In this document: piece by piece, positions 14,372 to 64,000 of the stretch | How the letters are laid out: every line of letters starts with the position of its first letter | Numbering within the stretch: the first letter of the stretch is position 1 | Source of the DNA: Phaeosaccion multiseriatum | Lineage: Eukaryota > Protista > Ochrophyta, other classes | Assembly (NCBI GenBank): GCA_965112735.1 | Contig: OZ218951.1 | Location: 2,604,001 to 2,668,000, forward strand | DNA length: 64,000 nt | Direction: 5' to 3' | The notes under the pieces: model-generated | What the model was told of the DNA's origin: nothing | The model's database searches: none | Seen by the model: only the letters and a program-made list of their open reading frames with translations | Position numbers and translations under genes: made by a program

Positions 14372-14414
<43 letters not shown>

Positions 14415-29330: not shown

Positions 29331-29642
29331 TGGCTGTGGTGGTGGCTGTGCGGTTGTGGCGGTTCGGCCCCAGACTGGCCTAGAAGCCTAGGCCTAGAGT
29401 CGAAATTTGGCCGGCCTAGAGGGGGCCTAGGCCTATTTTTGGCGCAGCCCCCCCGGCCTAGGCCTATTACGGTGTGCGCCGGGACCGCAATCAGTAATCA
29501 GCCCCCAGCTGGCGCATAATCAGTACTCAGGCCGGCTGGTCACCGGCTGTAAGCAACCAGGCCGGCTGGCGCCGGTCATAGTCAGTAATCAGGCCGGCTG
29601 CGCCGGCCGCAATCAGTAATCCGATAATCGGTCAGGGTCGAC

Positions 29643-30080
29643 TCCCTCCCTCCCTTCCTTCCTCCCTCCCTCCCTCCCTCCCTCCCTCCCTCCCTCCCTC
29701 CCTCCCTCCCTCCCTCCCTCCCTCCCTCCCTCCCTCCCTCCCTCCCTCCCTCCCTCCCTCCCTCCCTCCCTCCCTCCCTCCCTCCCTCCCTCCCTCCCTC
29801 CCTCCCTCCCTCCCTCCCTCCCTCCCTCCCTCCCTCCCTCCCTCCCTCCCTCCCTCCCTCCCTCCCTTCCTCCCTCCCTCCCTCCCTCCCTCCCTCCCTC
29901 CCTCCCTCCGCCCCTCCCTTCCTCCTTCCTTCTATCCCTCCCTATCCGTCTATCCCACTGTCCCTCCCTCCCTCCCTCGCTCGCTCCCTCCCTCGCTCCC
30001 TCCCTCCCTCCCTCCCTCGCTCCCTCCCTCCCTCCGCCCCTCCCTCCGCCCCTCCCTCCATCCCTCCCTCCCTCCCTCTA
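29643..30080. repeat. (CCCT)n tract 1
   Basis: Seen directly. Confidence 0.95.
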
Positions 30081-30389
30081 TCCCGCTATTCCTCCCTGTG
30101 GAAAGTCGATTCGTAAGTCATGGCCCAGGCCCAGGCAGATACGGTGAGAACGAGTGGCGTGGCTCTCACTATCCTATGTGCGTAGGTGGTCGTTTAGGAC
30201 TAGCATGCGATAAGTTAATAGAGGCAAGACTGGCTGCTAGGCTGGCTTTGGGGTTGCTGTTACCTTGTCCGTGTGTCTAGTTCTATCCTATCTGTAGGCG
30301 ACAGCGCATGTCGTTTTACACTATCTGTAGGCGACGGCGCTGGTCGTTTTACATCCCTCCCTACCTCCTTCTATCCCTCTACCCCTTCC

Positions 30390-31038
30390 GCCCTCCCTTC
30401 CTCCCTCCCTCCCTCCCTCCCTCCCTCCCTCCCTCCCTCCCTCCCTCCCTCCCTCCCTCACTCCCTCCCTCCCTCCCTCCCTCCCTCCCTCCCTCCCTCC
30501 CTCCCTCCCTCCCTCCCTCCCTCCCTCCCTCCCTCCCTCCCTCCCTCCCTCCCTCCCTCCCTCCCTCCCTCCCTCCCTCCCTCCCTCCCTCCCTCCCTCC
30601 CTCCCTCCCTCCCTCCCTCCCTCCCTCCCTCCCTCCCTCCCTCCCTCCCTCCCTCCCTCCCTCCCTCCCTCCCTCCCTCCCTCCCTCCCTCCCTCCCTCC
30701 CTCCCTCCCTCCCTCCCTCCCTCCCTCCCTCCCTCCCTCCCTCCCTCCCTCCCTCCCTCCCTCCCTCCCTCCCTCCCTCCCTCCCTCCCTCCCTCCCTCC
30801 CTCCCTCCCTCCCTCCCTCCCTCCCTCCCTCCCTCCCTCCCTCCCTCCCTCCCTCCCTCCCTCCCTCCCTCCCTCCCTCCCTCCCTCCCTCCCTCCCTCC
30901 CTCCCTCCCTCCCTCCCTCCCTCCCTCCCTCCCTCCCTCCCTCCCTCCCGCCCTCCCTCCCTCCCTCCCTCCCTCCCTCCCTCCCTCCCTCCCTCCCTCC
31001 CTCCCTCCCTCCCTCCCTCCCTCCCTCCGTCCCTCCCT
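30390..31038. repeat. (CCCT)n tract 2 (~650 bp)
   Basis: Seen directly; it produces the spurious SLPP/GGRE ORFs. Confidence 0.95.
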
Positions 31039-34776: not shown

Positions 34777-37230
34777 TCAAACTGCATCGAATCTATCGGC
34801 ATTCTTGGTCTCCTCAGGCTGATGCACACTCTGCCACTGGAAAGATACTACTCCTCGGCGAGGGCTGTTTCCCTCTCGAACCACATGTCTCCTCGACCCC
34901 ACTCTGCCCTTGTTGCGAAGGGTTCGCTCTTCTGCCGGGGCTCCGCCGCTGTCCAGCTCCGTTCCGTGACGCGGCGCAGCGAGCGCTCGGGAGGACAAGA
35001 CGTGCTTTCTCAGCGGTATGCCCACCCACGCCACGTCTCCACGCTTTGAATTGGTGACACTTTCACCTCTCATGGCCATGCTCAGGTCACCAACGTTAGC
35101 TCCTGCTTCAACGCGGCATCCAGGCTGCAAGTGAGCCCTTGCTCCGAGCCACGCGTTCTCCTTGACTTGCACAGTCTTGAAGACGAACCCTCCCGTGCCT
35201 TCGATGGTGTGCGCGAAGATTGAAGAGTCTTGCAACACCACCGCTTCGTCTCCAATGACGAGAAGATGCGCATCATAAGCGAGCCTGAGCCATAAAGATG
35301 TGTCCTTGCCAACACTTGCCCCCAGCAGCCGCAGCCACGCCGCGTACACCGGCCCGCCCGCGAAGTACCTGATGCAGAGAGCCTCAATGAAGGCAGGGCC
35401 CATGCTGCCCAAGTCGTATATATCCCGCGAAAGCGAATCGAGCGCTACGGGAGGCTGCCCCTCTTTGGCAGGCAAGGATGTGCCCAGAACTCGATGGAGA
35501 AGAATAACTGAGCAAGCGCCCGCCAAGGCCATGAGAACTTGAAAGACGAAGCTCCCCAACACAAGAAAGAACACTCCAGTATGGCTCTCGCTCAGAGTAT
35601 CCCTCGCCACCACTTCTGGAAGGACGAAGGGACAGAAGGCGGCAGCACCATGCACATGGCCATTGCGCAGCAGCAGGTCAGATACCGACGCGCTGATCAA
35701 CACCCCCGGACACCACGCGCCGAGGAGCAGCACCACAGTCGCAAGCCCACACAGCGCATTGTGCATCCTCGACGGAACAGGAAGACTGGCTGCTGCATCG
35801 ACGCCATCCTTCTCAGCAGCAGCACTCACTGGGTTCGGCACCACAAACGGCCGAGGGGCGCCCACTACAGAAGAGTTGCACGGTACGTCGTCGTCTCCAC
35901 TCACAACGGTGCGATCTGCGACCGTGCTTCCGTCCCCAATGCAAGCTCCGCCTAGGAGAAGAGCTTCGTTCGCAACAATGCTGAAGCGGCCGATTGTGAT
36001 GCTTTGCGTATCCTCGTCTCCACGACCACCCGCATCAGCGAAAAGGTGCACAGAGCCCGCGAGCTGGGAGTTTTCCCCTATCCTGAGCTTCTCCCATATC
36101 GTAGTGATAGGAAGGGTAGAAAGTGCGCACCCCCGCTCCAGCCTGGCGCCCATGGCGGAAGCAAAAGCACGGTTGAGCCCACATCTTGCCACAAGAAGGA
36201 AGCCAGCCTTGAAGAGAGGACTCTCCTGAAGAACTCCGAGTGACAGCCGTGTGGTGGCGCTGGGGCCGAGCAGCAAGAATACACGCTGGATCGATAGCAC
36301 TGCCACCATGTACAGCATGCTTCCGATCAGCAGCAGCACGGGGAACGCCAATGTACGAGCGAAGATGGGGACACTCTCCCCCGCGCCGTCGTCATCACCC
36401 CCACCGGCAAGCACAAGTATCCAGAGGGGCAGCAGGTACGACCCCAAGTTGGTCACTGAAAGCAGGGCCAAGGCAAAAAGCTCTTTTCCTGCCCGCCGCA
36501 GCTCCTGCTCGCGTTCGACCTCTGCCAGCGGGCCAGAAAGTAGCGAATGGCCGAGCGACGCGTACGGACCGAGCTCCATCCCCTCGCCGATGACCAAGTC
36601 CTTTAGCTCCTCATCCAGGCCCTCCTCCCCCTCCTGCGTCTGCCCCCCCTCCCAGGGAGACGGACACACGTTGGACAGTATGCCCACCTTTGCTCCCTTC
36701 CCGATCCTCACGCGATGGACATGGAGCATGCCATTCCGAGTAATGACAGACGGGCGAATGACGGCTCCGTACTCGATCACGGCCCCTTCTCCAATCTCGA
36801 TCAAGTCATGCTCGTGCAGCAGCCAGCTCTCTAAGCGCGCGCTTCCACTGATTCGTGCCCCCAGCAGGCGGTTCCACACCCGCAAGGCGAAGGTACCACG
36901 GAGAACAGAAATCAGCGGTGCGGCAAGTTTCAGCACATTCTGCACAGCATACCACCGCCAGTAGTACGAGCTCCTCACGGACCATCGCCCCGGTCGCATG
37001 CGGCCAAGCACAGTCCACTTCACCACTGCAATCAGGGCAAGGACCCAGCTTAGTGACACGACGACGAGGAGTGGTAGCCAAGAAAGAATCGTCGTGTTGC
37101 CGCGCCCTGCTCTACGTAGCAAGTACACGCCAACGAAGCTGGGAGAAAACCCGCAGCTGAGCACAGCAACAACGAGCAGCCAACTCAGAACCTGCAGCAC
37201 CACTTGCTTGCCAGTGCTGAGCCTCCGGTG
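34777..37230 (-). other. Membrane-embedded terminal domain: three repeats of (TM pair + RxLGAx[IV]G hexapeptide beta-helix); Pls / TIGR02353-type
   Basis: [38 protein letters not shown]...[21 protein letters not shown]...LRIGENSQL...[21 protein letters not shown]...[10 protein letters not shown]...FAHTIE...WVGIP, separated by hydrophobic helices. Confidence 0.85.
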
Positions 37231-40200
37231 CGCTTTCGTCGCTTCCCCTTCTTCACCGACTGACTCGAAATCGCGCTCCTCGTCCTTCACTCGGGCTTCG
37301 CTTGCTGCCGACGACTCTTGTCCGCTGTCTCCTCTACCTCCGCCCTCCTCCGCGGCACCAAGCACTGAAAGTGCCACAGCGGTTCGGTTCTGGAAGATCT
37401 GCATTACTGTCAGAGCCTGCAGGAGTCACACAGACACAACAGGGTCAGCAACAAGGGCGAGACACAACACGACGAAAGCTTTGTGCTCAAAGTCACTCAC
37501 CTCGAAGCCGGGAACCTCTGCCCGGATACGCGAAACCGCCTGAGCCGCACTCAACGATGTTCCCCCCTCTGCGAACAAGTCGTCATTGGCCTGCAAGTGA
37601 GGCTGCTCCGTGGCCTGCCTCAGGATGCCCAGCACTTGGCGGGCAGTGTCGCCTAACGCCTCATCACCATCGGACGCCTTTACAGCGGTTTTGTTTCCCT
37701 TCGCTTCCGCCTTGATCATCCTCAGCACCTCTTTCACGTCTCTCTTCCCACTGCTCGTCATCGGTAGAGCATCCACGGCCACAGCCGTGCTCGGCACCAT
37801 GTATGACGGTAGCAGCCTGCTCACTCCTTGCAGCACCATCTCAACTTCGGCACTAGAAGGTGTCAGAGCCGCCACAACCGTCTCGCGCTCTCTGTCCACG
37901 GCTGCCACAGCGCTCCTCACACCCTCTTGATGGAGCAGCGCAGCCTCCACCTCGCCCAGCTCAATGCGATAGCCGCGCACCTTCACTTGAGAGTCTCGGC
38001 GACCGCTAAACACCAGCGATCCGTCTGCCAGCTGCCGCACCAAGTCACCCTGTCAGAACGTGTTCAGTTTGAGACGCGTCAGATCAGAACACTACAGCAT
38101 AGGCAGCAGAGAAACCTACCTCCACCCCACCCTGCGCTCTGCTTGTCACTGCAAGACATGCCAAAAGCAAGCCAAATGTACACACAACACACGCACACAC
38201 ACAAAGCCGCATACCCATGGGCAACCTTTTCGACTTACCGTACGATACACCCTGCGCTGGTCCGCCAGGAAGGGCGCGGGGATGAAGGCCTTCGACGTGA
38301 GCTCTGGGCGATTCAAGTATCCACGCGCCAGCTGTCTCCCCCCAATGCACAGCTCGCCCTCCACGCCCTGAGGCACCAGCTGCAGACGCTTGTCCACCAC
38401 ATACACTTGCACGCCGGCTCGAGGCTTGCCGATGACGGACGCACTCGACAGAGCCCTAGAGGAGTACTCATGTGCGATCACGGCAATAGTTGCCTCGGTT
38501 GGGCCGTAGCTATTGACAAGGCGCACACGGTGCCTCCACATGTCCACTTGGTCTTGCTTTATCGGTTCCCCACCCAAAGCGATCGACCGTAGGGTGGCCT
38601 CCTGCGCCCCTGTGGCGATGTCGTGCGGCCGAAGCAGCGACAGCAGTGAAGGGGTGCAATCAATGTCCGTCACCTTCAAAGATCGTATCAGCTCCGGCAG
38701 GTCATTCAGCATGGAGCCCTTCTCTGCCAAGCACAGCGTCGCCCCACACGACAACGTCCCGAACAGCAGCTCCACAGACGCATCAAATGTCAGAGCAGCA
38801 CTCAGGAGCACACGAGAAGATGCCGTTATCGTCAGTTCGAATTCGTAGAGCGTCGCCAGGAAGTTGGCCGTGCTTCTGTGCTCAATCATCACGCCCTTTG
38901 GCCGGCCGGTACTACCGGATGTGTAGATCACGTACGCCATGCTCTCGCCCACCGCGTGGCACACAGGCTCCGCGGTACCCTCCACTTGCATCACAGCCAC
39001 CACGTCCACACAGCTCGCGTCTCCGACACGCCGCGCTAAGCTGGCATCGGCGGATGCCAGCACCTCAGACTCGCCTGCTGCCTTTGCCGTCGTCAGAACG
39101 ACGCTCAGCCCGGCATCCTGTGCGATCATCGACAGCCTATCGTCGGGATGCTCGGGATCCAGGGGCACGTACGCCGCCCCGGCCTTGAGCACGCCCAGCA
39201 CTGCCACAACCGCCTCCACGCAGTCCCCAGCAATCAGCACCCCCACCAGGCACTCCGGCCCCACGCCCCTCCCCTGCAGCATGCATGCCACCGCATTCGC
39301 ATGCCCATTGAGCTCCCCGTAGCTCATCACCCGACCCGTCTCATACTCGTGCAGGGCTTCCTGCTCCGGACTGCGAGAGGCCACCTCTTCGAAAGCCGCG
39401 TGCAGGAGGGGTGGCGGTGGCGATGCTTCCTCTGCACCTCCCTGCTCGTCTCCATTGGCATCCCCCGCCACCAGTGCAGCGCCGCTCAACGTCTCCACCA
39501 CCTTCACACGGTCTTCGTGGGCCAAGAGATTCAGCTTCCACACGCTCTCGCCCGGCCTGCCCACTGCACTCTCCAGCAGCGCCAGGAAGCTCCGCGCCAG
39601 GGTCTCCACTGTGGCCTGGTCGAAGACCGCCGTATCGTAGCACAGGCTGCCGTGCATGTCCGACGCACTGTCCGTGCTGCGCACAAGGCTTAGCTCGATG
39701 TCAGTCTGGCTAAGATTAATGGCCTGCTGCTGTCCAGCCTCCTCCGTCATGATCTTGTGGAGTGCTCCAGCTGACAGCTGGGCCTCCTCCTCCACGGCGC
39801 TGGCATTTCCCTCCTGCAGTACAAAGAAGGCCTGCAGTGCCTTGCCACCACTCTTTCTGCCCAGCTGGGCCCGCTCCACCACCTTGTGGAACGGTGCCTC
39901 GGCATGCTTCATGGCACCCAGATACGCGACCTGTACGCGAAGCAGCACCTCCCCAAAGCTGGGGCTTCCTCCCAGGCCCAGACGGAACGCGAGGGTATTG
40001 ACGAAGCATCCCAGCACTCCTTCCAAGCCTTGCGCCACGTCTCTTCCGAAGTGCGCAGTGCCCACCACCACATCCTCCGCTCCGCACACACGAGCCAGCA
40101 GCACTTGGAACGCGCCCATGAGCCCCACAAACAGCGTGACGGAGCTGCTCGAGCATAGGTTGCTCAGCTTCACTATCAGCGAAGCCGGCAGAACAACAGC

Positions 40201-43200
40201 GACACTCCCGCCGCGCCCCCCCACAATCCCATCTTGACCTACAGTCTCCGTCAGATGCGGGCCGAAAGCACCGTGCGGTCGGTCGAGGGGCAGGGTCAGT
40301 GAAGGCGCCCCCGTTAGCTGCCCCTGCCAGTACTCCAACAGCTGCTCCAGGGCCAGGCCGTTGTCCCCGTCCAGTCGCGACCGCTGCCACCGGGAGTAGT
40401 CCGCATACCCAAACGGCAGAGCCGCTAGCGCCTTCGTCGCCTCTCGGCCAGACACGACAGCCCCCCACAGGACCAACAGCTCGCGCGAGAACAGCTTGGA
40501 TGACCACCCATCCATGATGGAGTGGTGGAAGACACACAGCACCGCTTGCCACCCCAGCGGGTGCTCCTTCTCATCATCCTGGGGCGGTGAAACGGTGACG
40601 ATGGTGCTGCGCCAGAGTGGCCTTTCCTCCTCCAAGTCAAACAGACGCCCCGCCTCTGCCAATAGCACGCTCTCGGCCTCTTCGTTGCTGTTCGCCTCGG
40701 CGGACAGGAGCACTGACGCCACAACCTCCGCTGCTGTGGTCTGCAGCCGCACCTGCTGCAGCGTCCCCTCCGGTGACCAGCTTAGCGCCAATCGCAGAAC
40801 ATCGTGACGCTCCACCATGGCGCACAGGGCACGGGACAAGCCGTCCACAACCTCGCTGGGCTCTCTCTCCGATTCGGAGCTGGGCATGGGCAGAAGCATG
40901 GGCACGTTGTATCGCGCCCTCCCGTCTGGGTCGCCCGCTCGCAGCACCACGTCCGACAGCAGCATGTGCTCCTGTTGGTACGACGCTGGAGCCTCACGAT
41001 GGTCGCCAACTCGCGATATCACCATCATACCAGGAAGCGTGTCCTCCCTGCTCGCACATAAGCGAGACACACCCCTCGCGGTGGGTGTCTGGAACATCTC
41101 TGCCACCTGGAGCGCCTGAGTACAGCAACGAGTAAAGATATCCGACGGTCCACAACTATATTAGCAAACCATTTGGAACTACCGGCCACACCAGAAAGAC
41201 AGCCCTCCATCCCACTCACCTCGAAGCCTGGCACCTCTGCGCGAATGCGTGCTGTGACACTTGCAGCGTCAAGCGAAGTGCCTCCCTCGGCGAACAAGTC
41301 GCCGCTGGCTCGCAGATCCGGTCGCCCAACAGCCTCTCGCATAATGCCGAGCACTTGACGGGTGGTGTCGTCCATAGGTGCGTCATCGCTGACGCCTAGG
41401 CTCCGCTGCCTGCCACGGCCATGGTCATGTGCCTCTCGAATGGCTCTAAGAACCTCTGTCACGTCTCGCTTCCCGCTGCTTGTCATCGGTAGAGCATCCA
41501 TGGCCACAGCCGTGCTCGGCACCATGTATGCCGGTAGCAGCTTGCTCACTCCTTGCAGTACCATATCAACTTCGGCACTAGAAGGTGTCAGAGCCGCCAC
41601 AACCGTCTCGCGCTCTCTGTCCACGGCTGCCACAGCGCTCCTCACACCCTCTTGATGGAGCAGGGCAGCCTCCACCTCGCCCAACTCAATGCGATGGCCG
41701 CGCACCTTCACTTGGGAGTCTCGGCGACCCCTAAACACCAGCGATCCGTCTGCCAGCTGCCGCACCAAGTCGCCCTGTCAGAACATAGTATGTTTTGAGT
41801 CGCGTCAGATCAGAACAGTGCACAGGGCGGGCAGCAGAGAGAACTACCTCCACCCCCCCCCCTTGCGCTCTCTTCTTGTCACTGCATGGCATGCTAAAAG
41901 CAAGCCAAATGTACACACAATACACGCACACACACAAAGCCGCACACCCATGGGCAACCTTTTCAACTTACCGTACGATACACCCTTCGCTGGTCCGTCA
42001 GGAAGGGCGCGGGGATGAAGGCCTTCGACGTGAGCTCTGGGCGATTCAAGTACCCACGCGCCAGCTGTCTCCCCCCAATGCACAGCTCGCCCTCCACGCC
42101 CTGAGGCACCAGCTGCAGACGCTTGTCCACCACATACACTTGCACGCCGGCTCGAGGCTTGCCGATAACGGACGCGCTCGGCACGGCAGACGGTGTGTAC
42201 TCGTGCCAGGTTACTACCACCGCCGTCTCTGTGGGTCCATAAATATTGCCCAGTCGCACTCGGTGTTTCCAGTAATCGACCTGCTCTTGACGTAAGGCCT
42301 CTCCCCCAAGCGCGATGGACCGAAGACTCGGGAAACCCACTTCCCCACCATGAGGCTGTGGGAGCAAAGACAGTAGTGACGGAGTGCACACCAAGAACGA
42401 TACCCCAAGCGAGCGCACAGCCTCTGGCAACTCGCTCAACATGGAGAGCTTTTGCACCAGGCACAGCGTCGCCCCGCATGACAGAGCCCCGAAGATCAAC
42501 GCCACTGACATATCGAAAGTCAAAGCGCTGCTCTGCAAAACCCGTGACGAAGGGTCTATGGTGCCCAACATTGTTTCGTAGATCGTCGCCATGAAGCCGG
42601 CCGCGTTTCTATGCTCGACCACCACACCTTTCGGTCGCCCGGTGCTTCCAGACGTGTATATCACATACGCCACATTGATGTCGACGGCCTTACACTCCAC
42701 CTCAGAGACTGTCGTAGCAGCCCCCTCGAGCTGCATCATGGTCCTCACATCCACACAGCTCGCGCCTGCGACGGTGCGAGCCGACCTACCGCCTGTGGGG
42801 AGGCCTTGCTCCACATGGTCCGCCCCAGTCGCTGCCGTGAGAACGACACTCAGCCCGGCGTCTTCTGCGATCATCGACAGCCTTTCGTCGGAATGCTCGG
42901 GATCCAGGGGCACGTACGCCGCCCCCGCCTTGAGCACGCCCAGCACTGCCACAACCGCCTCCACGCAGTCCCCAGCAATCAGCACCCCCACCAGGCACTC
43001 CGGCCCCACGCCCCTCCCCAGCAGCATGCACGCCACCGTATTCGCATGCCCATTCAGCTCCCCGTAGCTCATCACTCGATCTGTCTCATACTCGTGCAGG
43101 GCTTCCTGCTCCGGACTACGAGAGGCCATCTCTTCGAAAGCCGTGTGCAGGAGGGGCGGCGGTGGCGATGCTTCCTCTGCACCTCCCTCCTCGTCTCCAT

Positions 43201-46200
43201 TGGCATCCTCCGCCACCCGTGCAGCGCCGCTCAGCGTCTCCACCACCTTCACACGGTCCTCGTGTGCCAAGAGACTCAGCTTCCACACGCTCTCGCCCGG
43301 CCTGCCCACTGCACTCTCCAGCAGCGCCAGGAAGCTCCGCGCCAGGGTCTCCACTGTGGCCTGGTCGAATACCGCCGTATTGTAGCACAGGCTGCCGTGC
43401 ATGTCCGACGCACTGTCCGTGCTGCGGCGCACAAGGCTTAGCTCGATGTCAGTCTTGCTAAGATTATTGGCCTGCTGCTCTCCAGCCCCCTCCGTCATGA
43501 TCTTGTGGAGTGCTCCAGCTGACAGCTGGGCCTCCTCCTCCACGGCGCTGGCATTTCCCTCCTGCAGTACAAAGAAGGCCTGCAGTGCCTTGCCACCACT
43601 CTTTCTTCCCAGCTGGGCCCGCTCCGCCACCTTGTGGAACGGTGCCTCGGCATGCTTCATGGCACCCAGATACGCGACTTGTACGCGAAGCAGCACCTCC
43701 CGAAAGCTGGGGCTTCCTCCCAGGCCCAGACGGAACGCGAGGGTATTGACGAAGCATCCCAGCACGCCCTCCAAGCCTTGCGCCACGTCTCTTCCGAAGT
43801 GCGCAGTGCCCACCACCACATCCTCCGCTCCGCACACACGAGCCAGCAGCACTTGGAACGCGCCCATGAGCCCCACAAACAGCGTGGCGGAGCTGCTCGA
43901 GCATAGGTTGCTCAGCTTCACTATCAGCGAAGCCGGCAGAACAACAGCGACACTCCCGCCGCGCCCCCCCACAATCCCATCTTGACCTACGGTCTCCGTC
44001 AGATGCGGGCCGAAAGCACCGTGGGGTCGGTCGAGGGGCAGGGTCAGTGAAGACGCCCCCGTTAGCTGCCCCTGCCAGTACTCCAACAGCTGCTCCAGGG
44101 CCAGGCCGTTGTCCCCGTCCAGTCGCGACCGCTGCCACCGGGAGTAGTCCGCATACCCAAACGGCAGAGCCGCTAGCGCCTTCGTCGCCTCTCGGCCAGA
44201 CACGACAGCCCCCCACAGGACCAACAGCTCGCGCGAGAACAGCTTGGATGACCACCCATCCATGATGGAGTGGTGGAAGACACACAGCACCGCTTGCCGC
44301 CCCAGCGGGTGCTCCTTCTCACCATCCTGGGGCGGTGAAACGGTGACGATGGTGCTGCGCCAGAGTGGCCTTTCCTCCTCCAAGTCAAACAGGCGCCCCG
44401 CCTCTGCCAATAGCACGCTCTCGGTCTCTTCGATGCTGTTCGCCTCGGCGGACAGGAGCACTGACGCCACAACCTCCGCTGCTGTGGTCTGCAGCCGCAC
44501 CTGCTGCAGCGTCCCCTCCGGTGACCAGCCTAGCGCCAATCGCAGAACATCGTGACGCTCCACCATGGCGCACAGGGCACGGGACAAGCCGTCCACAACC
44601 TCGCTGGGCTCTCTCTCCGATTCGGAGCTGGGCACGGGTAGAAGCATGGGTACGTTGTATCGCGCCCTCCCGTCTGGGTCGCCCGCTCGCAGCGCCAGGT
44701 CCGACAGCAGCATGTGCTCCTGTTGGTACGACGCTGGAGCCTCACGATGGTCGCCAACTCGCGATATCACCATCATACCAGGAAGCGTGTCCTCCCTGCT
44801 CGCACATAAGCGAGACACACCCCTCGCGGTGGGTGTCTGGAACATCTCTGCCACCTGGAGCGCCTGAGTACAGCAACGAGTAAGGACATCCTATATTAGC
44901 AAACCATTTGGAACTACCGGCCACACCAGAAAGACAGCCCTCCATCCCACTCACCTCGAAGCCTGGCACCTCTGCGCGGATGCGTGCTGTGACACTTGCA
45001 GCGTCAAGCGAAGTGCCTCCCTCGGCGAACAAGTCGTCGCTGGATCGCAGATCCGGTCGCCCAACAGCCTCTCGCATAATGCCGAGCACTTGACGGGTGG
45101 TGTCGTCCAGAGGTCCGTCATCGCTGACGCCTAGGCTCCGCTGCCTGCCAGGACTATCATGATGTGTCGCTCGGATGGCTCTGAGAACCTCTTTCGCGTC
45201 TCGCTTCCCGCTGCTCGTCATCGGCAGAGCATCCACGGCCACAGCCTTGCTCGGCACCATGTATGCCGGTAGCAGCTTGCTCACTCCTTGCAGCACCATC
45301 TCCACGTCGGCACTAGAAGGTGTCAGAGCTGCCACAACCGTCTCGCTGTCTCTGTCCACGGCTGCCACAGCGCTCCTCACACCCTCTTGATGGAGCAGCG
45401 CAGCCTCCACCTCGCCCAGCTCAATGCGATAGCCGCGCACCTTCACTTGAGAGTCTCGGCGACCCCTAAACACCAGCGATCCGTCTGCCAGCTGCCGCAC
45501 CAAGTCGCCCTGTCAGAACGTAGTATGTTTTGAGTCGCGTCAGATCAGAACAGTGCAGTAAGGAGCAGAGAGAACTACCTCCATCCCCCCCCCCCCCTGC
45601 GCTCTCTTCTTTTCACCGCATGACAGGCCAAAAGCAAGCCAAATGTACACACAACACACGCACACACACAAAGCCGCACACCCATGGGCCACTTTTTCGA
45701 CTTACCGTACGATACACTCTGCGCTGATCCGTCAGGAAGGGCGCGGGGATGAAGGCCTTCGACGTGAGCTCTGGGCGATTCAAGTACCCACGGGCCAGCT
45801 GTCTCCCCCCAATGCACAGCTCGCCCTCCACGCCCTGAGGCACCAGCTGCAGACGCTTGTCCACCACATACACTTGCACGCCGGCTCGAGGCTTGCCGAT
45901 GACGAACCCACTCGACATGGCACCCTGACTGTACTTGTGCGTCGTCACGGCATTCGTTTCGGTTGGGCCGTAGCTATTGACAAGGCGAACACTGCGCCTC
46001 CACATGTCCACTTGGCCTTCCTTGATCGGCTCCCCAATCAATGCGATGGACCGTAAGGTGGCCTCCTTAGCTCCATTGGTGATGTCTTGCGGTCGAAGCA
46101 GCGACAGCAGTGACGGGGTGCAGTACATGTCTGTTACCCTCAAAGACTGTATCACCTCCGGCAGGTCGTTCAGCATGGAGCCCTTCGCTGCCAAGCAAAG

Positions 46201-55200: not shown

Positions 55201-58200
55201 GTTGACCCTGCCAGTATTCAAGCAGCTCCTCAATACGACCTTCGCCGTCCAGCCGAGCTCGTTGCCACCTGGAGTAGTCCGCGAAGCTGAAGGGCAGAGC
55301 CGGTAGGTCTTGTGCAATGCCTCTCCCCGCCATGGCAGCTGCGCATGTGGCCTTGAACTCGCCCTGGAAGAGCAAGTAGGATGCACCATCAAAGATGCAA
55401 TGATGGAAAGTAGATACCGCGGCATACTGCTCCTCCACTCCGCTCTGCTGCGGGAGGTGTACGACCAACGTACGCCATAGAGGCTGGCTCCGCTCCAAAT
55501 CGAATGTACGAGCGATATCGGCCTCGATCAGGCTCCGAGCCGCCCCAACACTGCTGGCCACGGCAGAAGAGAGACAAGCTGACACCACCGCGGCTGCCGT
55601 AGTTCCAAGCTGTACCTGCCTCAGAGAGCCCTGCTTTGTCCACTCAAGCGCCGTCCGGAGCACGTCATGTCGCTCCACTATGCTGCCTAACACTTGTGCT
55701 ATCATGTCCACAATTTCAGCGGATGTTCGTCCGGAGATCAGCGCGACTGGCAGCGGCAGCACCACTGGGAGATTGTACGCGCTCTGCCCGCCAGGGGCAA
55801 TCGTCCGCAGTGCTACGTCCGAAAGGTACATGTGCTCCTGCTGGTAAGCCGCGGGGGCGTCAGCATCCAAGGAGTAGTGCGAAAGACCTGTTGCTTGATC
55901 ATCAGGCTCACTCAGCGGCCCCGAGTCCGCTCCCAGAACTTCCTCTTCGATCCATGAAGCCATTGCAGACACTGATGGATACGTAAAGAAGGCGCCGCTC
56001 GACATGGTGACACCACACCAGGCCTCGATTCGCTTGCCAAACTCCACGGCCGCCATTGAATCGAGCCCGGCTTCCATCAAGGGCATCGCTGCTGCCAAGG
56101 TGAAGTCCTCGCCAACGCACTCGACTGCCATGTCCGTCAGGACTTGCTCGATCCTCTCCCGCCGTGCTGACTCCGGCAAGAGCAGGAGCTCATCCCGCAC
56201 CTCGGCATTGACGCTGTAGCACTTTGTCGCCTCACCACTTTCTCCGCGGTCCGTCAACTGCCCGAGGAAATCGCTGAGCACAGGGTCCAAGCTCGCTCGA
56301 AATCTGCCCCACCTCATGGCCGGCATGACGGCCACCTCCTGCACGTTGGCTTGCATTTGACTTGCAAGGACGGCTTCCAGAGCCTTCATACCCAGCGCCG
56401 ATGAGATCAGGCCCACTCCGGCCATCTCCGCAGCTTTCGACACCATTTCAAGCCGCACCGCCATACCTACGTCGCCCCATGGGCCCCACTGAACGTTGGA
56501 AGCAGGAAGGCCAAGCTGGCGTCGGCGGTAGCGCATCAGCCCGTCCAAAGCAGCGTTGGCCCCGGCATAGGCGCTCTGATTGGACAAGCCAAGCAAAGCG
56601 GAGGTCGATGAGTACGAGGCGAAGAAGTCGATCTCCTCCCTGCCGCTCGCCGCCCACTCAAGGCACAGCGCGTGGAGATTCCAACCTCCCTGGACCTTGG
56701 CGGCAAAGACATTTCGCACGTTCTCTTCCGTCTCGCCCGACAACATCCTCTTTGCGCCATTCACCCCCGCTGCGTGGATCACACCCCGAACATGAGGCAG
56801 CTCCACCAAGGCCGTTGCCACAGTATCTCGAAGCTGATGCATGTCGGACACATCGCAGGCCACGGCCACAGCGGTGACACTCTCCATGCTCTGCAGGGCC
56901 TGCCACAGCCCTGAAACTTCCTCCGCCGCCCGGCCGCTTCGAGATAGTAGGAGCAGGTATCGGGCACCCTGGGAGACCAAGTGATTCGCCGTCACTAGCC
57001 CCAGCCCCCCCAGACCACCGCTGATCAGGTAGGTCCCATCCTCTCTGCACTTGAAGCGATCGACTCCTACCGGCGTCAGATGGAGTGTGCTGGGCACCAG
57101 CCTCGGAGCGAGAATCTCACTCCCTCGAACCAGCAGGTCCACGCCTCGGCCGCCGTCGCGGGCTCCTGCAGCCACCGTCACAGCCTGGGAGATAGCTTGG
57201 GCTTCCATGTTCTCTACTCTAGGTCGTGCATCCTCAGACTGTGGATACATGGCATACTCAAGGTCGATGTGGTTCACATCGAGGTCGCCCCGCTCCAGGC
57301 GTACGCTTCTCACCAGTCCCACTGCCCAGCTGTCCTGCCAACCCGCACCGCTGTACACGCCCGTTGTCACCACCGTGATCGGCATCACTGCCGCGTCCCC
57401 GTCTAAGCTGTGTACAGTTTGCACAAAGTGGATTGCCCCATCGGTAGCAGAGCCCGTTGCTGACGTCAAGTAGAAGAGATGGGCCCCACGGGGCTGCGCG
57501 TCTGAACCGACCGCCTCCACCACGTGCACCTCTACACCACTTGCTGTCGCCGCGCTTCGGACAGCTTCCAAGGCTCTGTGGTTGTTCGAAGCGTGCTGCT
57601 CTTCAGCTGCCTGGGGAATCACGACGAGCCACGGAAGGCGGCCGGTCAGCGAAGCCTGCTGCGAAGCCGTGGGCACCTCCACCGCCTCCCACTCAACAAC
57701 ATAGAGCGGGCCCTGCTCAGCTTCACTCCGCGGCTGAGGTGCTGCTGTGGCTCGCGCTGTGTACCAAGGAAAGGCTTTGCGCGTTGGGAACAGGATGTGC
57801 TCCTCGCCCTTACTCTCTGGCTGCTGCACTGTGCTCAGAGCTGCTCGAAACGACTCCTCGGAGCTCTTCCCGCGCGTGAGAGAAGGGATCCACACCAGCC
57901 CCTCGCGACGCTCGCACTTGGCTCCCATGCTGCTCAGCACAGGGTGGGGGCCCACCTCAACGATGCTCAGGTCAGCCCCCCTCCCGTCTCCCATCCAGTG
58001 CTCCACCACCGTGTGGATGCCTTCTGCGAACAGCACTGGCGACAGCATGTGTTGCACCCAATACGTCGCCTGCGTCACCTCCTCCTCTCTCACCACCTCA
58101 CCCGTCAAGTTGGATACCAGGGGGATGCGTGGGGCGCTCAATGATACCTGCCTCAGAACCTCCTCCAGCGCACGTACAGCGGGCTCCATCAGAGGAGAGT

Positions 58201-61200
58201 GGAAGGCGTGCGGCACCTCCAGGGCCTTGCAGCCCACCCCATCTGCCATGAGCTTCTCCACCACCTTGTCCACAGCGCTGCGAGCTCCAGAGATCACGCT
58301 CGCCCTCGGTCCATTCGACGACGCCAGCACCACCTCGTCTGCCCCCCCTGCAGCGTCGATGCTTGCCAAAGTCGCCTCCTTGCCTGCCCTCACTGCGAAC
58401 ATCACTCCCTTGCCCTCGGGGCAGGCCTGCATGGCGGCTCCTCTCTTGGCGGACAGCATCAGCCCGTCCTCCAGCGACATGACGCCGGCCACGCACGCCG
58501 CCACCACCTCGCCCAGGCTGTGGCCCATCACCATTGAGGGCTCCACGCCCTCCGACTTCCACAGCTCACACAGGGCGTACTCCAGCACAAACAGGCACGG
58601 CTGGCAGTAGCGCGTCTCCTTCAGCAGCGCTTGTGCAGTCTCCTCCTCCTCCTCGTCCCCGTCCTCAGCGGCGGCAGGGTACATGAGCTCCACCACAGAC
58701 TTGTCCAGCCAAGCCCGCTCCATGAGCAGCGTGCTGCACCGCTGCACGCACTCGCGGAACACGCCCTCCTTCTCGTACAGCTCCCTGCCCATGCCCACGT
58801 ACTGCGAGCCCTGTCCGGTGAATACAAACGCCACTGGAGGCTCTGCTTGATGGGCATTAGGGCCTGGCGCACCCTCATTCTTCTCCCCATAGCTCTTCAG
58901 CAGAACGTGTGCATTCGTCCCCCCGGCCCCGAACGAGCTCACCCCCACCAACACATCTCCCTCGTCCTCCAGCTCCACCATCTTCGATGGAAGCTGCACG
59001 TGGAAGCTGTCCATGTCCAGCTCCGGGTTGACGCTCTCGAGGTGAAGGTTGGCCGGCACAGCGCGGTGCTGCAGCATCAACACGGCCTTGATGAGCCCAG
59101 CAACGCCCGCCGCACCCTCCAGATGGCCGATGTTGGTCTTCAACGCACCCACCACCAGCGGGAAAGACTCGTTGCGGTTCTTTCCGTACGTGGCCTTCAG
59201 AGCGCTCATCTCGATGGGGTCGCCTAGCGAGGTTCCCGTGCCGTGTGCCTCCAGGATGCGTACTTCGGACCCCTCCCGACCGGCCTCACGCAGCGTCGCC
59301 TCGATGAGTCTCTGCTGGGCGGCGGGGCTGGGGGCCGTCAGACGGGCACTGGCTCCATTGTGGTTGACGACACAGCCCTCAATCACAGCGAGGACCGTGT
59401 CTCCGGCAGCGAGGGCGTCACCCAGGCTTTTCAGCACAACGGCGCCGCACCCCTCACCACGCACGTATCCGTTGGCTGAGGCGTCGAACGTCTTGCAGCG
59501 CCTGGGAAGGTCAATCGGAATGGAGGAAGTGATATCAGCGATTGAATTGTACGCAGCTTGAGAAAATGCACACAGAGGTCGGCGGCACTCCCTCATTTCC
59601 ACATAAGCCCCTCGCGTTTGTGGAGGGCAGCAGTAGCACAAAGTAGATGGTGTGAGCGGAGTATTAAGGGAACTACAGGAATCGAAGTCGAGGTGAGTAC
59701 ATCATACATCACAGGAGAAGAAAAACAACACATGGTGTGGAGCAGCCGGTGCCACGTACCAGTCGGAGGAGAGGAAGGTCCCCGCAAACAATGACTGAAA
59801 GGTACTCTTCCCGAGCAGCAGGTTCACGCCACCGACCACCGCCGAGTCGCACTTCCCCAGGCGGAGGTTGCTGCAAGCAGCGTCCAGAGCCACCAGAGAC
59901 GACGAGCATGCTGTCTGCAGCAACGCACTGGGGCCGCAGAGACCCAGAGTGTAGGATACGCGATTCGCAATGTTCGAAGCCGTCAGGCCCATTCCGCCGT
60001 AGGCGCTCTGAGCACCGGCATCTCCTGCCACGAAGCCCCAGTCCGTGTCCGACAAGCCTACAAACACGCCTGTGTTGCTGCCCCGCAGGCTGCTCTTGCT
60101 GTGGCCCGCGCGATGGAGGGCCTCGAAGGCCACCTCCAGCATAAGGCGCTGATTGGGGTCCATTACCTCTGCCTCGGCAGCACTGATGCCAAAGAAGGCA
60201 TTGTCGAACATCTCGACGCCCTCGATGAACCCACCCTGTAGCTGCAGCTCGCCCGCCTTACTCTCCCACCTGTCGTGTGGCGCTGTCGTGATGCAGTCTC
60301 TACCCTCGCACATCATCGACCAGAACTGCTCCGGGCTGTTGGCTCCACCGGGGAGGCGACACGCCATACTCACCACAGCGATGGGGGCTCGAGAGTCCGA
60401 GGACAAGTGCCGTCCTGTCAGTACTTCTTTACCGCCTTCTGCATCATCCGGCACCTCAAGAATCTGGGCCTCGAGCCACGCGGCCATTGCAGACACCGAT
60501 GGATACGAGAAGAAGGCACCATTCGAAACGGTGACACCACACCAGGCCTCGATTCGCTTGCGAAACTCCACGGACGCCATTGAATCGAGCCCGGCTTCCA
60601 TCAAGGGCATCGCTGCTGCCAAGGTGAAGTCCTCGCCAACACACTCGACTGCCATACCCGTCAGGACTTGCTCGATCCTCTCCCGCCGTGCTGACTCCGG
60701 CAAGTGCAGGAGCTCCTCCCGCACCTCGGCATTGACGCTGTAGCCCTTTGCCGCCTCACCACTTTCTCCGCAGTCCGTCAACTGCCCGAGGAAATCGCTG
60801 AGCACAGGGTCCAAGGTCGCTCGAAATCTGCCCCACCTCATGGCCGGCATCACCGCCACCTCGTGCACGTTGGTATGCGTCTGGCTTGCAAGGACGGCAT
60901 CCAGAGCCTTCATACCCAGCGCCGGTGAGATCAGGCCCACTCCGGCCGTCTCGAGAAGCCTATGTAGCGTCGTAGACTTTCCTGCCATGCCCGCGTCACC
61001 AAATGGCCCCCACTGAATGCTGGTGCCCGCCAGTTTGAGCTGCTGCCGGCGGTAGCGCATCAGACCATCAAGCGCGGAGTTGGCTGCAGCATAATTCGTC
61101 TGTCCGATGTTACCAAGCGTCCCAGCCGTAGATGAATAGGATACGAAGAAGTCCAAGTTCTCTTCCCTCTCGGCCCACTCAAGCGACAGCTCATGCAGAT

Positions 61201-64000
61201 TCCAAGCCCCCTGAAGCTTTGGTGCGAAAACTTTCCGCACGCTCTGATCGGTCTGCCCAGCAAACTTGCGGTCATCTAGAGCCCCCGCTGCGTGGATCAC
61301 ACCCCGAACACGAGGCAGGCCCACCAAAGCGTTGGCTACAGCTCCTCGAAGCTGGCCCATGTCGGACACATCGCAGGCCACGGCCACAGCGGTGACACTC
61401 TCCATGCTCTGCAGGGCCTGCCACAGCTCTGAAACTTCCTCCGCCGCCCGGCCGCTTCGAGACAGGAGGAGCAAGTGTCGAGCCCCCTGGGAGACCAAGT
61501 GATTCGCCGTCACCAAGCCCAGCCCCCCCAGACCACCGCTGATCAGGTACGTCCCATCCTCTCTGCACTTGAAGCGATCGACTCCTGCCGGCGTCAGATG
61601 GAGTGTGCTGGGCACCAGCCTCGGAGCGAGAATCTCACTCTCTCGAACCAGCAGGTCCACGCCTCGGCCGCCGTCGCGGGCTCCTGCAGCCAGCGTCACA
61701 GCCTGGGAGATAGCTTGGGCTTCCATGTTCTCTACTCTAGGTCGTGCATCCTCAGACTGTGGATACATGGCATACTCAAGGTCGATGTGGTTCACATCGA
61801 GGTCGCCCCGCTCCAGGCGTACGCTTCTCACCAGTCCCACTGCCCAGCTGTCCTGCCAACCCGCACCGCTGTACACGCCCGTTGTCACCACCGTGATCGG
61901 CATCACTGCCGCGTCCCCGTCTAAGCTGTGTACAGTTTGCACAAAGTGGATTGCCCCATCGGTAGCAGAGCCCGTTGCTGACGTCAAGTAGAAGAGATGG
62001 GCCCCACGGGGCTGCGCGTCTGAACCGACCGCCTCCACCACGTGCACCTCTACACCACTTGCTGTCGCCGCGCTTCGGACAGCTTCCAAGGCTCTGTGGT
62101 TGTTCGAAGCGTGCTGCTCTTCAGCTGCCTGGGGAATCACGACGAGCCACGGAAGGCGGCCGGTCAGCGAAGCCTGCTGCGAAGCCGTGGGCACCTCCAC
62201 CGCCTCCCACTCAACAACATAGAGCGGGCCCTGCTCAGCTTCACTCCGCGGCTGAGGTGCTGCTGTGGCTCGCGCTGTGTACCAAGGAAAGGCTTTGCGC
62301 GTTGGGAACAGGATGTGCTCCTCGCCCTTACTCTCTGGCTGCTGCACTGTGCTCAGAGCTGCTCGAAACGACTCCTCGGAGCTCTTCCCGCGCGTGAGAG
62401 AAGGGATCCACACCAGCCCCTCGCGACGCTCGCACTTGGCTCCCATGCTGCTCAGCACAGGGTGGGGGCCCACCTCAACGATGCTCAGGTCAGCCCCCCT
62501 CCCGTCTCCCATCCAGTGCTCCACCACCGTGTGGATGCCTTCTGCGAACAGCACTGGCGACAGCATGTGTTGCACCCAATACGTCGCCTGCGTCACCTCC
62601 TCTCCTCTCACCACCTCACCCGTCACGTTAGACACCAGGGGAATGCGTGGGGCGCTCAATGACACCTGCCTCAGAACCTCCTCCAGCGCACGTACAGCGG
62701 GCTCCATCAGAGGAGAGTGGAAGGCGTGCGGCACCTCCAGGGCCTTGCAGCCCACCCCCTCCGCCGTGAGCTTCTCCACCACCTTGTCCACAGAGCTGCG
62801 AGCTCCAGAGATCACGCTCGTGCTCGGTCCATTCGACGACGCCACCACCACCTCGCCTGCCCCCCCCGCAGCGTCGATGCTTGCCAAAGTCGCCTCCTTG
62901 CCTGCCCTCACTGCGAACATCACTCCCTTGCCCTCGGGGCAGGCGTGCATGGCGGCCCCTCTCTTGGCGGACAGCATCAGCCCGTCCTCCAGCGACATGA
63001 CGCCGGCCACGCACGCCGCCACCACCTCGCCCAGGCTGTGGCCCATCACCATCGAGGGCTCCACGCCCTCCGACTTCCACAGCTCACACAGGGCGTACTC
63101 CAGCACAAACAGGCACGGCTGGCAGTAGCGCGTCTCCTTCAGCAGCGCTTGTGCAGTCTTGTCCTCCTCCTCCTCCCCGTCCTCAGCGGCGCCTAGGTAC
63201 ATGAGCTCCACCACAGACTTGTCCAGCCAAGCCCGCTCCATGAGCAGCGTACTGCACCGCTGCACGCACTCGCGGTACACGCCCTCCTTCTCGTACAGCT
63301 CCCTGCCCATGCCCACGTACTGCGAGCCCTGTCCAGTGAACAAGAACGTCACCGGCGATCTCTTCTTATTTCGCTGCACATCCAGCTGCAGCAAGGCTCC
63401 GCTCTCGCTCTCCTCTACTAGAGTCGGTCCGAAGCTGCTGAGCACCACATGGGCGTTGGCTCCTCCCGCACCGAAGGAGCTGACAGCAGCAGTACGCCTC
63501 TCCCCGTCCCTGGCACTCAGTGGCACTATGGCAGACGGCAAAGTCACCGCAAAGCCATCCAGGCGCAGCTCCGGATTGAGCTTCTTCATGTGGAGATTGG
63601 GGGGAGCCGATCCGTGCTGAAGGACCAGCAGAGCTTTGATGAGGCCAGCGATTCCGGACGCACCCTCTAGATGCCCGATATTGGTCTTCACCGCCCCAAC
63701 CACTAGGGGCCGATCTTCCTCGCGGCCGTGGCCATACACGGCTCTCAAAGCACTCATCTCGATGGGGTCGCCGAGAGAAGTCCCGGTGCCGTGTGCCTCC
63801 ACGTAATCAACCTCCAGACCGTTCAAGCCGGCCTCCGCCAGTGCCTGCTCCATCAGACGCTGCTGAGCAGTAGGGCTCGGGGCAGTGTAGCGCAAACTTC
63901 TCCCGTTGTGGTTCGCAGAGCAGCCATTGACGACAGCAAGGATGTGGTCGCCATTGGTCTGTGCATCGTCCAGTCGCTTCAGCACCACGGCGCCGCAGCC
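34777..64000 (-). CDS. Giant hybrid cis-AT type I PKS / 5-module NRPS with Pls-like membrane terminal domain (5'-partial; ~9,170 aa in window)
   Basis: Exons 64000-59760, 59501-53159, 52961-52407, 52301-49425, 49228-48674, 48582-45706, 45509-44955, 44863-41972, 41774-41220, 41115-38239, 38049-37501 and 37416-34777 have GT-AG boundaries and sum to 27,516 nt (9,172 codons) with no internal stop. Motifs: KS TACSSS/HGTGT/NIGHLE, AT GHSLG and HAFH, KR GGLGGLG, ACP GLDSM, C HHxxx[21 protein letters not shown]|GDL/SGKRD, T GGTSL. Confidence 0.95.
37380..41015 (-). other. NRPS module 5 (C-A-T); hand-read A code DAEDAGSIAK (acidic pocket)
   Basis: [31 protein letters not shown]; GGTSL. Confidence 0.85.
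41075..44760 (-). other. NRPS module 4 (C-A-T); A-T near-identical to module 1 (offset 11,187 bp)
   Basis: C domain of the module 2/3/5 type joined to an A-T of the module 1 type. Confidence 0.85.
44820..48480 (-). other. NRPS module 3 (C-A-T); near-identical to module 2 (period 3,719 bp)
   Basis: Same pocket residues as module 2; only scattered substitutions. Confidence 0.85.
48540..52200 (-). other. NRPS module 2 (C-A-T); hand-read A code DVAYAISAVK
   Basis: HHSIMDG; [31 protein letters not shown]; GGTSL. Confidence 0.85.
52260..55870 (-). other. NRPS module 1 (C-A-T); hand-read A code DMAVAGIVVK
   Basis: C motif HHCIFDG; A motifs [31 protein letters not shown]; T motif GGTSL. Confidence 0.85.
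55930..60390 (-). other. PKS module n: KS-AT-KR(no LDD)-ACP
   Basis: [26 protein letters not shown], one intron (59502-59759), [36 protein letters not shown]. Boundaries approximate. Confidence 0.9.
60440..64000 (-). other. PKS module n-1: KS (C-terminal part)-AT-KR(B-type, LDD)-ACP
   Basis: [47 protein letters not shown]. No DH or ER. Boundaries approximate. Confidence 0.9.

Follow-up and report, generated by a model that had tools for sequence, protein, structure and literature searches.

The window analysed here is a stretch of 64,000 nucleotides from the ochrophyte Phaeosaccion multiseriatum (contig OZ218951.1, positions 2,604,001 to 2,668,000 of the forward strand), numbered from its first letter. 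From 64000 down to 34777 its minus strand holds a gene of 12 exons and 11 introns, whose splice sites were located by eye and by pattern. The predicted product is an assembly line that joins polyketide synthase (PKS) and non-ribosomal peptide synthetase (NRPS) modules, and that ends in a membrane domain distantly related to that of two bacterial homopolymer synthetases, Pls of Streptomyces albulus (epsilon-poly-L-lysine) and PosA of Acinetobacter baumannii (delta-poly-L-ornithine). Its sequence makes the gene a candidate for a new logic of chain release.

The megasynthase gene and its modules

All 11 introns run from GT to AG, measure 84-258 nt and have the donors GTGAGT, GTAAGT or GTACGT. Their removal leaves a coding length of 27,513 nt, or 9,171 codons with no in-frame stop, which rules out chance. 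The reading frame is still open at the window end, 64000, so the gene must extend upstream of the window. The spliceosomal introns mark it as eukaryotic. Composition fits this picture: introns have 51% GC, against 66-73% at the third codon positions of exons (GC3), and codon usage is correlated among the PKS, NRPS and terminal parts (r = 0.76-0.90). By these measures the locus has the signature of a real, compositionally homogeneous eukaryotic gene, most likely a single functional one that encodes a megasynthase of more than 1 MDa. The GC skew of the plus strand is steadily negative (-0.13 to -0.25) across the whole 29-kb gene (window 34001-64000), so the coding strand is G-rich relative to C throughout.

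Domain and homology searches were all run on single exons rather than on the joined protein. The Pfam matches give the order ketosynthase (KS, C-terminal half)-acyltransferase (AT)-ketoreductase (KR)-acyl carrier protein (ACP), KS-AT-KR-ACP, five modules of condensation (C), adenylation (A) and carrier (T) domains, and then a terminal exon of 879 amino acids (aa). Down to the last intron, the features are:

59760..64000, minus: exon 1, the part in the window (the gene goes on past 64000); Pfam, motifs
63940-63587, minus: KS1, C-terminal half (Pfam; the active-site half lies beyond the window)
63349-62351, minus: AT1 (Pfam; GHSLG, HAFH)
61555-61001, minus: KR1 (Pfam; LDD motif present)
60619-60473, minus: ACP1 (Pfam; GLDSM)
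60385-59762, minus: KS2, N-terminal part (Pfam; TACSSS)
59502..59759, minus: intron 1, 258 nt, GTACGT...CCCAG, within KS2; splits the W codon of SSDW/RCKTFDA
53159..59501, minus: exon 2; Pfam, motifs, A code
59503-59036, minus: KS2, remainder (Pfam)
58828-57836, minus: AT2 (Pfam; GHSLG, HAFH)
57037-56474, minus: KR2 (Pfam; LDD motif absent)
56098-55949, minus: ACP2 (Pfam; GLDSM)
55786-54440, minus: C1 (Pfam; HHCIFDG)
54325-53234, minus: A1 core (Pfam; code DMAVAGIVV(K))
37501..53158, minus: NRPS array, rest of module 1 and modules 2-5; Pfam, splice sites, DNA identity
52961-52407, 52301-49425, 49228-48674, 48582-45706, 45509-44955, minus: NRPS-array exons
44863-41972, 41774-41220, 41115-38239, 38049-37501, minus: NRPS-array exons, continued
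37417..37500, minus: last intron, 84 nt, GTGAGT...CTGCAG, in phase

In the PKS part, KS, AT, KR and PP-binding domains are each matched twice, and the core motifs are found, with HGTGT in both KS domains, TACSSS in KS2 and GLDSM in the ACPs. The AT motifs GHSLG and HAFH are of the malonyl type. At least two malonyl-specific KS-AT-KR-ACP modules are predicted to add beta-hydroxylated C2 units. No exon has a Pfam match to a thioesterase (TE), reductase (R), dehydratase (DH), enoylreductase (ER), methyltransferase (MT) or epimerisation (E) domain, so the polyketide part should retain its beta-hydroxyls. The two modules are 92.7% identical in DNA over 2.9 kb (self-BLAST). Within this near-identity KR1 and KR2 differ at an 11-residue segment, that of the LDD motif, which by the usual KR rule suggests opposite hydroxyl configurations. 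The closest relatives of the PKS exon are mostly bacterial modular PKSs, at 32-40% identity, plus two Chrysoparadoxa fragments.

The NRPS part has five sets of Pfam matches to Condensation, AMP-binding, AMP-binding_C and PP-binding, with intact core motifs (HHCIFDG or HHSIMDG in C, the A10 lysine in SSGKRD, and GGTSL in T). A very high PDB score to LgrA, the linear gramicidin synthase (E 3e-102), had looked like that of a Gly-type A domain; it was rejected as a clue to specificity, being just the sum of two A-domain matches. The original prediction, made from the letters of the window alone, had described one spliced frame of more than 9,170 aa with at least two cis-AT PKS modules, five C-A-T modules and neither thioesterase nor reductase, and all of these features were recovered.

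Each NRPS unit of about 3.72 kb consists of an exon for C and the N-terminal part of A, an intron of 189-197 nt that splits YRT from GDL, and an exon of 549-555 nt for the C-terminal part of A and T; a second intron of 84-105 nt follows ...RAEVPGFE. Self-BLAST puts the identity of the units, introns included (37417-55786), at 94-98%, and with the closest pair, M2 and M3, the range of these tandem copies is 94-99.5%. This 3.7-kb repeat came from self-BLAST; Tandem Repeats Finder, with a longest period of 500 nt, reported no repeat. A column-wise comparison of the five units reveals a mosaic. The C domains of modules 2 to 5 (M2-M5) are 98-100% identical, and that of M1, which accepts the polyketide, differs across its initial 1 kb or so. 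The 700-nt A-core comes in two types, one shared by M1 and M4 and the other by M2 and M3. The A-core of M5 is a diverged copy of the M2/M3 type, with identity dropping from 97% to 70% across the core, and the T5 domain with its intron is just 45-60% identical to its T1-T4 counterparts. M2 and M3 differ at 19 of 3,719 positions, without gaps, and are distinct but very recent copies. These patterns point to an NRPS part whose modules were duplicated in tandem, or homogenised by gene conversion, very recently, while only the A-cores and the last T were kept different. The array offers a clear case, in nature, of how assembly lines evolve: its copies are near-identical including their introns, and they differ only at the A-domain specificity cores, one KR stereochemistry motif and the last T domain.

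The specificity codes of the A domains were extracted by alignment; on Streptomyces-type matches the same procedure recovers DAESIGTVV, the code published for Pls (PMC10522769 Suppl. Table 2). The codes read DMAVAGIVV(K) in M1 and M4, DVAYAIS(NA/AV)(K) in M2 and M3, where the deletion of one residue leaves the final two positions ambiguous, and DAEDAGSIA(K) in M5. Acidic pocket residues occur in M5 only. Its code combines Asp at position 1 (Asp235) with Glu at position 3 (Glu239), as in the diamino-acid-activating members of the Pls/PosA family; M1-M4 lack the Glu. The M5 code matches the Arg consensus, D-A/V-E-D-I/V/L-G-A-V/I-T/D-K (PMC12283262), at 7/10 positions and that of Lys at 5/10, and the Lys code of Pls begins with the same D-A-E. 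Six code prefixes were sought in the supplement of PMC12283262, and none was present there. To judge by its code, the M5 substrate would be a basic amino acid of the Arg/Lys type, and the predicted peptide follows the pattern a-b-b-a-c, with c the basic residue. Of the 987 residues aligned between M5 and M2, 71 differ. A 143-column stretch of the A-core holds about half of these differences, and 5-6 of nine code positions are changed, a pattern that looks like a directed switch of specificity.

In passing the chain from cis-AT KS-AT-KR-ACP modules to a C domain, and then along collinear C-A-T modules with intact core motifs, the predicted enzyme resembles the hybrid type I PKS-NRPSs of bacteria and fungi. 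However, the latter are soluble and end in a TE, a reductase, a terminal C/Ct domain or a Dieckmann cyclase, whereas the window gene ends in an integral-membrane domain with left-handed beta-helices (LbH). The giant type I PKSs of algae (Shelest et al. 2015, PMC4661987; the Prymnesium parvum PKZILLAs, bioRxiv 10.1101/2024.01.29.577497) are likewise megadalton enzymes encoded by intron-containing genes with recent module duplication, but they are PKSs only and the window gene has NRPS modules too. Such modules are reported to be rare in algae, and the largest microalgal NRPS known in 2015 had 10 domains (PMC4661987). The window gene encodes an unusually large NRPS-containing megasynthase for a eukaryote. 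We found no mention of a transmembrane (TM) or Pls-like terminal domain in PMC4661987.

The terminal membrane domain and its relatives

All five T domains are split by a phase-0 intron after ...RAEVPGFE, and the position of this intron in T5 is the same as in T1-T4. The exon that follows in T1-T4 resumes with a 19-aa segment completing the carrier domain, and a homologous 19-aa segment opens the terminal exon, whose earliest ATG (37404) falls in the middle of a carrier-domain helix. Since it starts with the C-terminal half of T5 and has its first ATG inside that helix, the terminal exon cannot stand alone, and its splicing to T5 is well supported by the sequence. The junction named in the original prediction, 37501/37416, proved to be a GT-AG intron of 84 nt (37500-37417) that separates the two halves of T5. 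The terminal exon contains:

37240..37416, minus: C-terminal part of T5, then an acidic linker rich in Gly, Ser and Glu
36517..37203, minus: unit 1, equivalent to C1 of Pls; TM1 37203-37147, TM2 37077-37021, helices and LbH 36999-36517
35827..36480, minus: unit 2, equivalent to C2; TM3 36480-36409, TM4 36351-36295, helices and LbH 36279-35827
34981..35766, minus: unit 3, equivalent to C3; TM5 35766-35695, TM6 35574-35518, helices and LbH 35499-34981
34777..34980, minus: C-terminal tail of about 67 aa, without homologue coverage (alignments of relatives end near exon aa 800-812), and stop
34779-34777, minus: stop codon TGA

Hydropathy reveals six hydrophobic segments, which form three pairs at exon aa 72-90/114-132, 313-336/356-374 and 551-574/615-633. 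Behind each pair comes a soluble region, some 150-170 aa long, with hexapeptide repeats (PF00132, E 4.8e-11). Hexapep is the sole Pfam match of the exon, and NCBIfam gives only TIGR02353, its Pls/PosA model, and LbH acetyltransferase models, the latter on unit 2 (aa 440-518). The three units are mutually homologous (hhalign probability 99.8-100%, E 1e-30 to 5e-47). An AlphaFold (AF2) model built on a 73-sequence alignment (pLDDT 80.5, pTM 0.88) has paired long helices and three beta-rich units. Its fold matches in the PDB, each to one unit, are only LbH acyltransferases and gamma-carbonic anhydrases: the Foldseek top ten comprises GlmU, LpxA, CysE, the maltose and streptogramin acetyltransferases and gamma-carbonic anhydrase (E 2.5e-4 and above, probability 0.84-1.0). 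A sequence search of the PDB gave weak matches to maltose O-acetyltransferase, and no solved structure of a whole Pls-type domain was found there by sequence or by fold.

This predicted layout agrees with the one published for the Pls/PosA domain (PMC10522769, PMC8506220). That domain is about 730 aa long and has three pairs of TM helices, six in all, which separate homologous units C1-C3 of about 180 aa; in the published models each unit is a left-handed beta-helix, and the three are related by pseudo-threefold symmetry. As in the window gene, the domain of Pls and PosA directly follows a T domain, there is no TE, and the last A domain has Asp235 and Glu239. The terminal domains themselves are homologous (E 1e-40). 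Yet Pls and PosA have a single A-T, without C or PKS, whereas the window gene has at least two PKS and five NRPS modules (five Condensation domains) upstream. Its A5 and T5 are paralogues of the modules of the same gene, and not a Pls-type A-T by descent. Finally, the window gene is eukaryotic and has introns, unlike those of Pls and PosA.

The homology is remote. TIGR02353 matches the terminal exon in three stretches (E 1.2e-40, 139.5 bits), below the curated cut-off of 423.1 bits and without an end-to-end match, whereas canonical controls (P0178 and P0001) reach 638 and 764 bits, each in a single end-to-end stretch. The original prediction expected TIGR02353 and LbH matches here, which were obtained, if under the curated cut-off for the former; it also described six TM helices interleaved with three hexapeptide-repeat domains, on which hydropathy, PF00132 and hhalign agree. 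A HMMER scan of 1.84 billion representatives returned 1,156 proteins, the best at E 6e-37 and about 30% identity. Most of the matches are of about 1,300 aa, as expected for proteins with A, T and terminal domain; those inspected are of the Pls/PosA type, and those with a name are annotated as Pls/PosA family. None of the 1.84 billion representatives is more than 50% identical to the terminal domain, and a metagenome scan with it found no relative. Conservation in the family was assessed on an alignment of 73 rows, the window against the other 72. Unit 1 is the best conserved in the window domain (the KW..GR..PG...RW motif is kept), and the best of the three TIGR02353 stretches, exon aa 70-299, falls on it; units 2 and 3 are less well conserved. 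In a quick maximum-likelihood tree the window groups with a protein of the ochrophyte alga Chrysoparadoxa australica (P0007) and a metagenomic one (P0029; SH-aLRT 94), inside a set of nine rows split from 64 canonical rows (SH-aLRT 99). We read the terminal domain, from its sequence, as a divergent member of the Pls/PosA terminal-domain superfamily.

Among the nine divergent rows, four end assembly lines or other multidomain proteins, not a lone A-T. The Chrysoparadoxa protein (CAM9397790.1) has the order DH-ER-KR-ACP-C-A-T-terminal domain. In a 4,380-aa transcript of Stygiella incarcerata (P0097, EP01028_P005930), the last ACP of a two-module PKS is directly followed by the terminal domain. 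A protein of Phalansterium solitarium (P0009, EP01116_P002995) is C-A-T-terminal domain. These three proteins and the metagenomic P0029 score 171-330 bits and are, like the window, under the TIGR02353 cut-off. The three protist proteins are thus like the window gene in being PKS and/or NRPS lines with a divergent Pls-like end and neither TE nor R, and they share its departures from canonical motifs, such as H-x-I for HLFEDR. Still, their identity to the window terminal domain is only 21-25%, none has five C-A-T modules, and the Stygiella protein, unlike the window gene, has no NRPS module before the terminal domain. The Chrysoparadoxa gene also differs from the intron-containing window gene: no intron interrupts the 9.6 kb available before the contig end truncates it, and its one NRPS module follows a fully reducing module. 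It lies in an intronless open reading frame that runs 9,588 nt from that end (CAXMZZ020000274.1, locus L001:1-9588). The annotated product has 2,459 aa, and the open frame reaches 2,076 nt further upstream, an extension that adds the N-terminal parts of DH and ER. Because this frame runs up to the contig end, the real gene should be a larger PKS-NRPS.

The original prediction knew of no characterised multimodular PKS-NRPS ending in this way, least of all in an alga. That part stands, in that no paper describing one was found: literature searches on TIGR02353, on Pls with PKS-NRPS, on Pls-like domains and on Pls structures turned up no account of the architecture, and the PosA paper notes only single-module homologues in Amoebozoa, Metazoa and 'Alveota'. 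The architecture itself is not unique to the window, since the Chrysoparadoxa, Stygiella and Phalansterium proteins end likewise. From its domains, the window gene would be a PKS-NRPS hybrid with a Pls-superfamily terminal domain, both of known kinds, in a combination that has uncharacterised protist analogues.

Chain release: a proposal and its rivals

Chain release determines the product of an assembly line, and to our knowledge the known release domains (TE, R and terminal C) are all soluble. We propose, with moderate confidence, that the terminal domain of the window gene acts as a membrane-embedded off-loading acyltransferase in place of a thioesterase. The fifth carrier domain, fused through the acidic linker to the six-helix membrane domain, would be where the chain ends its course. 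The terminal domain would anchor the megasynthase in the membrane, accept the polyketide-pentapeptidyl thioester from T5 and pass the acyl chain to an amine (or hydroxyl) nucleophile at the membrane. An amphiphilic product would then be released, possibly coupled to its export. The likely catalytic base is the family-invariant His of unit 3 (exon aa 736).

Several lines of evidence argue for this proposal. The donors from which LbH enzymes transfer acyl groups are thioesters, acyl-ACP in the case of LpxA and LpxD. These two enzymes and the LbH acetyltransferases that use acetyl-CoA (maltose, serine, streptogramin) share with the window units the LbH fold, the threefold axis and thioester donors, but they are soluble homotrimers, whereas in the window three helices are fused in one chain, with TM hairpins between them, and tethered to a carrier. 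Pls forms amide bonds from T-bound lysine with the same kind of domain (PMC8506220). The His of QTHLFEDR, present in 99% of the other 72 rows, is kept in the window (FAHTIEG, exon aa 736), and when the seven most divergent sequences are aligned it stands in every one. Finally, the terminal domain of Stygiella has no adjacent A domain and can therefore act only on a carrier-bound acyl chain. Of the fates that the original prediction offered for the product (release, polymerisation or export), the comparative data favour release by acyl transfer over polymerisation.

Other observations weigh against off-loading by acyl transfer. We infer the role of the unit-3 His, since the papers examined do not establish which residues of Pls are catalytic. 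Of the 85 alignment columns conserved in at least 80% of the other 72 rows, the window keeps just 41, and the Asp of the unit-3 TE.DL motif, common to all 72, is a His (YDAHL, exon aa 717), so that catalysis could be altered or lost. The exact placement in the tree is uncertain because all the branches are long. The N-terminus of the gene lies outside the window, and the module count is sensitive to assembly error, given modules so nearly identical, even if M2 and M3 differ at 19 sites. These points also set bounds to the claim of a Pls-type terminal unit, which holds for the homology and for the build of six TM helices and three units, but not in the strict sense, given the score (139.5 vs 423.1 bits), the few columns kept, the change of Asp to His and a position outside the canonical clade.

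One alternative, which we regard as unlikely, is that A5, T5 and the domain of TM helices and three LbH form a true Pls-type iterative polymerase embedded in the line. Such an enzyme could string the basic residue into an oligo-isopeptide tail, to be capped afterwards by the polyketide-tetrapeptide, or it could link whole polyketide-peptide units through the side-chain amine of the C-terminal basic residue. A5, T5 and the terminal domain do repeat the full domain order of Pls, which makes polymers with exactly these three domains (PMC8506220; PMC10522769). Moreover, D-x-E is found in A5 alone of the five A domains and is near-universal in those of the Pls family (DAE 59, DME 14 and DFE 8 of the sequences examined). 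It arose with changes at 5-6 of nine code positions, in an A-core whose DNA is otherwise 70-97% identical to that of M2/M3, and an acidic pocket residue also occurs in the last A domains of the Phalansterium (D at position 4) and Chrysoparadoxa (E at position 5) proteins. However, the code fits Arg at least as well as Lys (7/10 against 5/10), and a guanidino group is a poor acyl acceptor. The terminal domain is outside the canonical polymerase clade and under the TIGR02353 cut-off. T5 is expected to hold the full chain, because C5 lies directly upstream. Since the Stygiella relative has no A domain beside its terminal domain, polymerisation of amino acids cannot be the general role of this subgroup.

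It is about equally improbable that the domain has lost its acyltransferase activity and remains only as a membrane tether or export conduit, the chain being freed by hydrolysis or by a separate enzyme. Its divergence is strong (139.5 bits, against 638-764 for canonical domains), 44 of the 85 conserved columns are changed, and to the replacement of the invariant Asp by His is added the loss of the AD motif of unit 2. Yet three units, six helices and a confident fold are intact over about 750 aa, without stop or frameshift, and the family-invariant His is retained. Relatives that, like the window gene, have neither TE nor R show these divergent features as well, and no release enzyme was seen among the larger open reading frames in the other 34 kb of the window.

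An artefact, be it an independent Pls-like gene in the 34777-37416 exon, a misassembled junction or array, or a pseudogene, is very improbable: modules 94-99.5% identical are a classic source of misassembly, and no close relative appeared in the collections searched, but the exon opens with the second half of a T domain after an intron at the conserved position (so that a false join is possible only within the 84-nt intron), an independent gene starting at 37404 would begin in mid-helix, 27.5 kb stay open once the 11 canonical introns are spliced out, all parts are alike in composition, and M2 and M3 differ at 19 positions.

Off-loading by a membrane-embedded acyltransferase may be part of something broader, an extension that we put forward tentatively and consider somewhat less likely than the proposal itself. 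The divergent branch of the Pls/PosA superfamily would be an unrecognised membrane domain for chain release (perhaps also export or polymerisation) in multimodular PKS and PKS-NRPS lines, replacing the TE in unrelated protist lineages. In the window gene it might couple a polyol-polyketide pentapeptide with a basic C-terminal residue to an amine acceptor at the membrane, or join such units by isopeptide bonds; cationic lipopeptides or comb polymers of a new class could result. If off-loading by this domain is real, a carrier-tethered, integral-membrane LbH acyltransferase ending a multimodular line would be a new off-loading logic, and the role of the Pls domain would reach beyond homopolymer synthesis.

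Other fusions and genomic surroundings

Otherwise unrelated fusion proteins of protists, bacteria and Eucalyptus carry this terminal domain too, and a biochemical answer here would help to annotate a wide, unstudied family. In Eucalyptus, proteins of about 2,300 aa (the P0115 cluster: E. grandis XP_039159797.1 and XP_039159799.1, E. globulus KAL3718670.1) fuse an amine oxidase, A, T, a Pls-like terminal domain and a catalase domain, in what appears to be an unstudied fusion of this family in a tree genome. Two metagenomic proteins (P0022 and P0037) have the order (cNMP-binding-)A-T-terminal domain-FMN-dependent alpha-hydroxy-acid oxidase, and fragments of the P0037 cluster are named Burkholderiales and Vicinamibacterales. 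The P0029 protein (locus L004), on a eukaryote-like contig, has two amine oxidases, two T domains and the terminal domain, and P0019 is A-T-terminal domain-phosphopantetheinyl transferase. Pairings of the terminal domain with redox enzymes are much more widespread than one would gather from the literature on homopolymers.

The larger open reading frames in the flanking 34 kb (42-4025, 14345-15532 and 20851-22971) encode ankyrin-repeat, TPR and PI3/PI4-kinase-like proteins. A search with the PI4-kinase exon gave just three weak matches, the best named one to Ectocarpus; this and the Chrysoparadoxa matches of the PKS and terminal parts hint at an alga. No tailoring, transport, phosphopantetheinyl transferase or release gene was seen among the larger frames scanned in this part of the window, so the megasynthase is apparently not in a biosynthetic cluster. 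The flank also has the long microsatellites (CTCC)n, with 109 copies, and (TCCC)n, with 171 copies, at 29642-30078 and 30354-31038, and several other C/T- or G/A-rich repeats occur between 28.3 and 34.5 kb. Such repeats explain why GC and AT skew are extreme at 30-32 kb.

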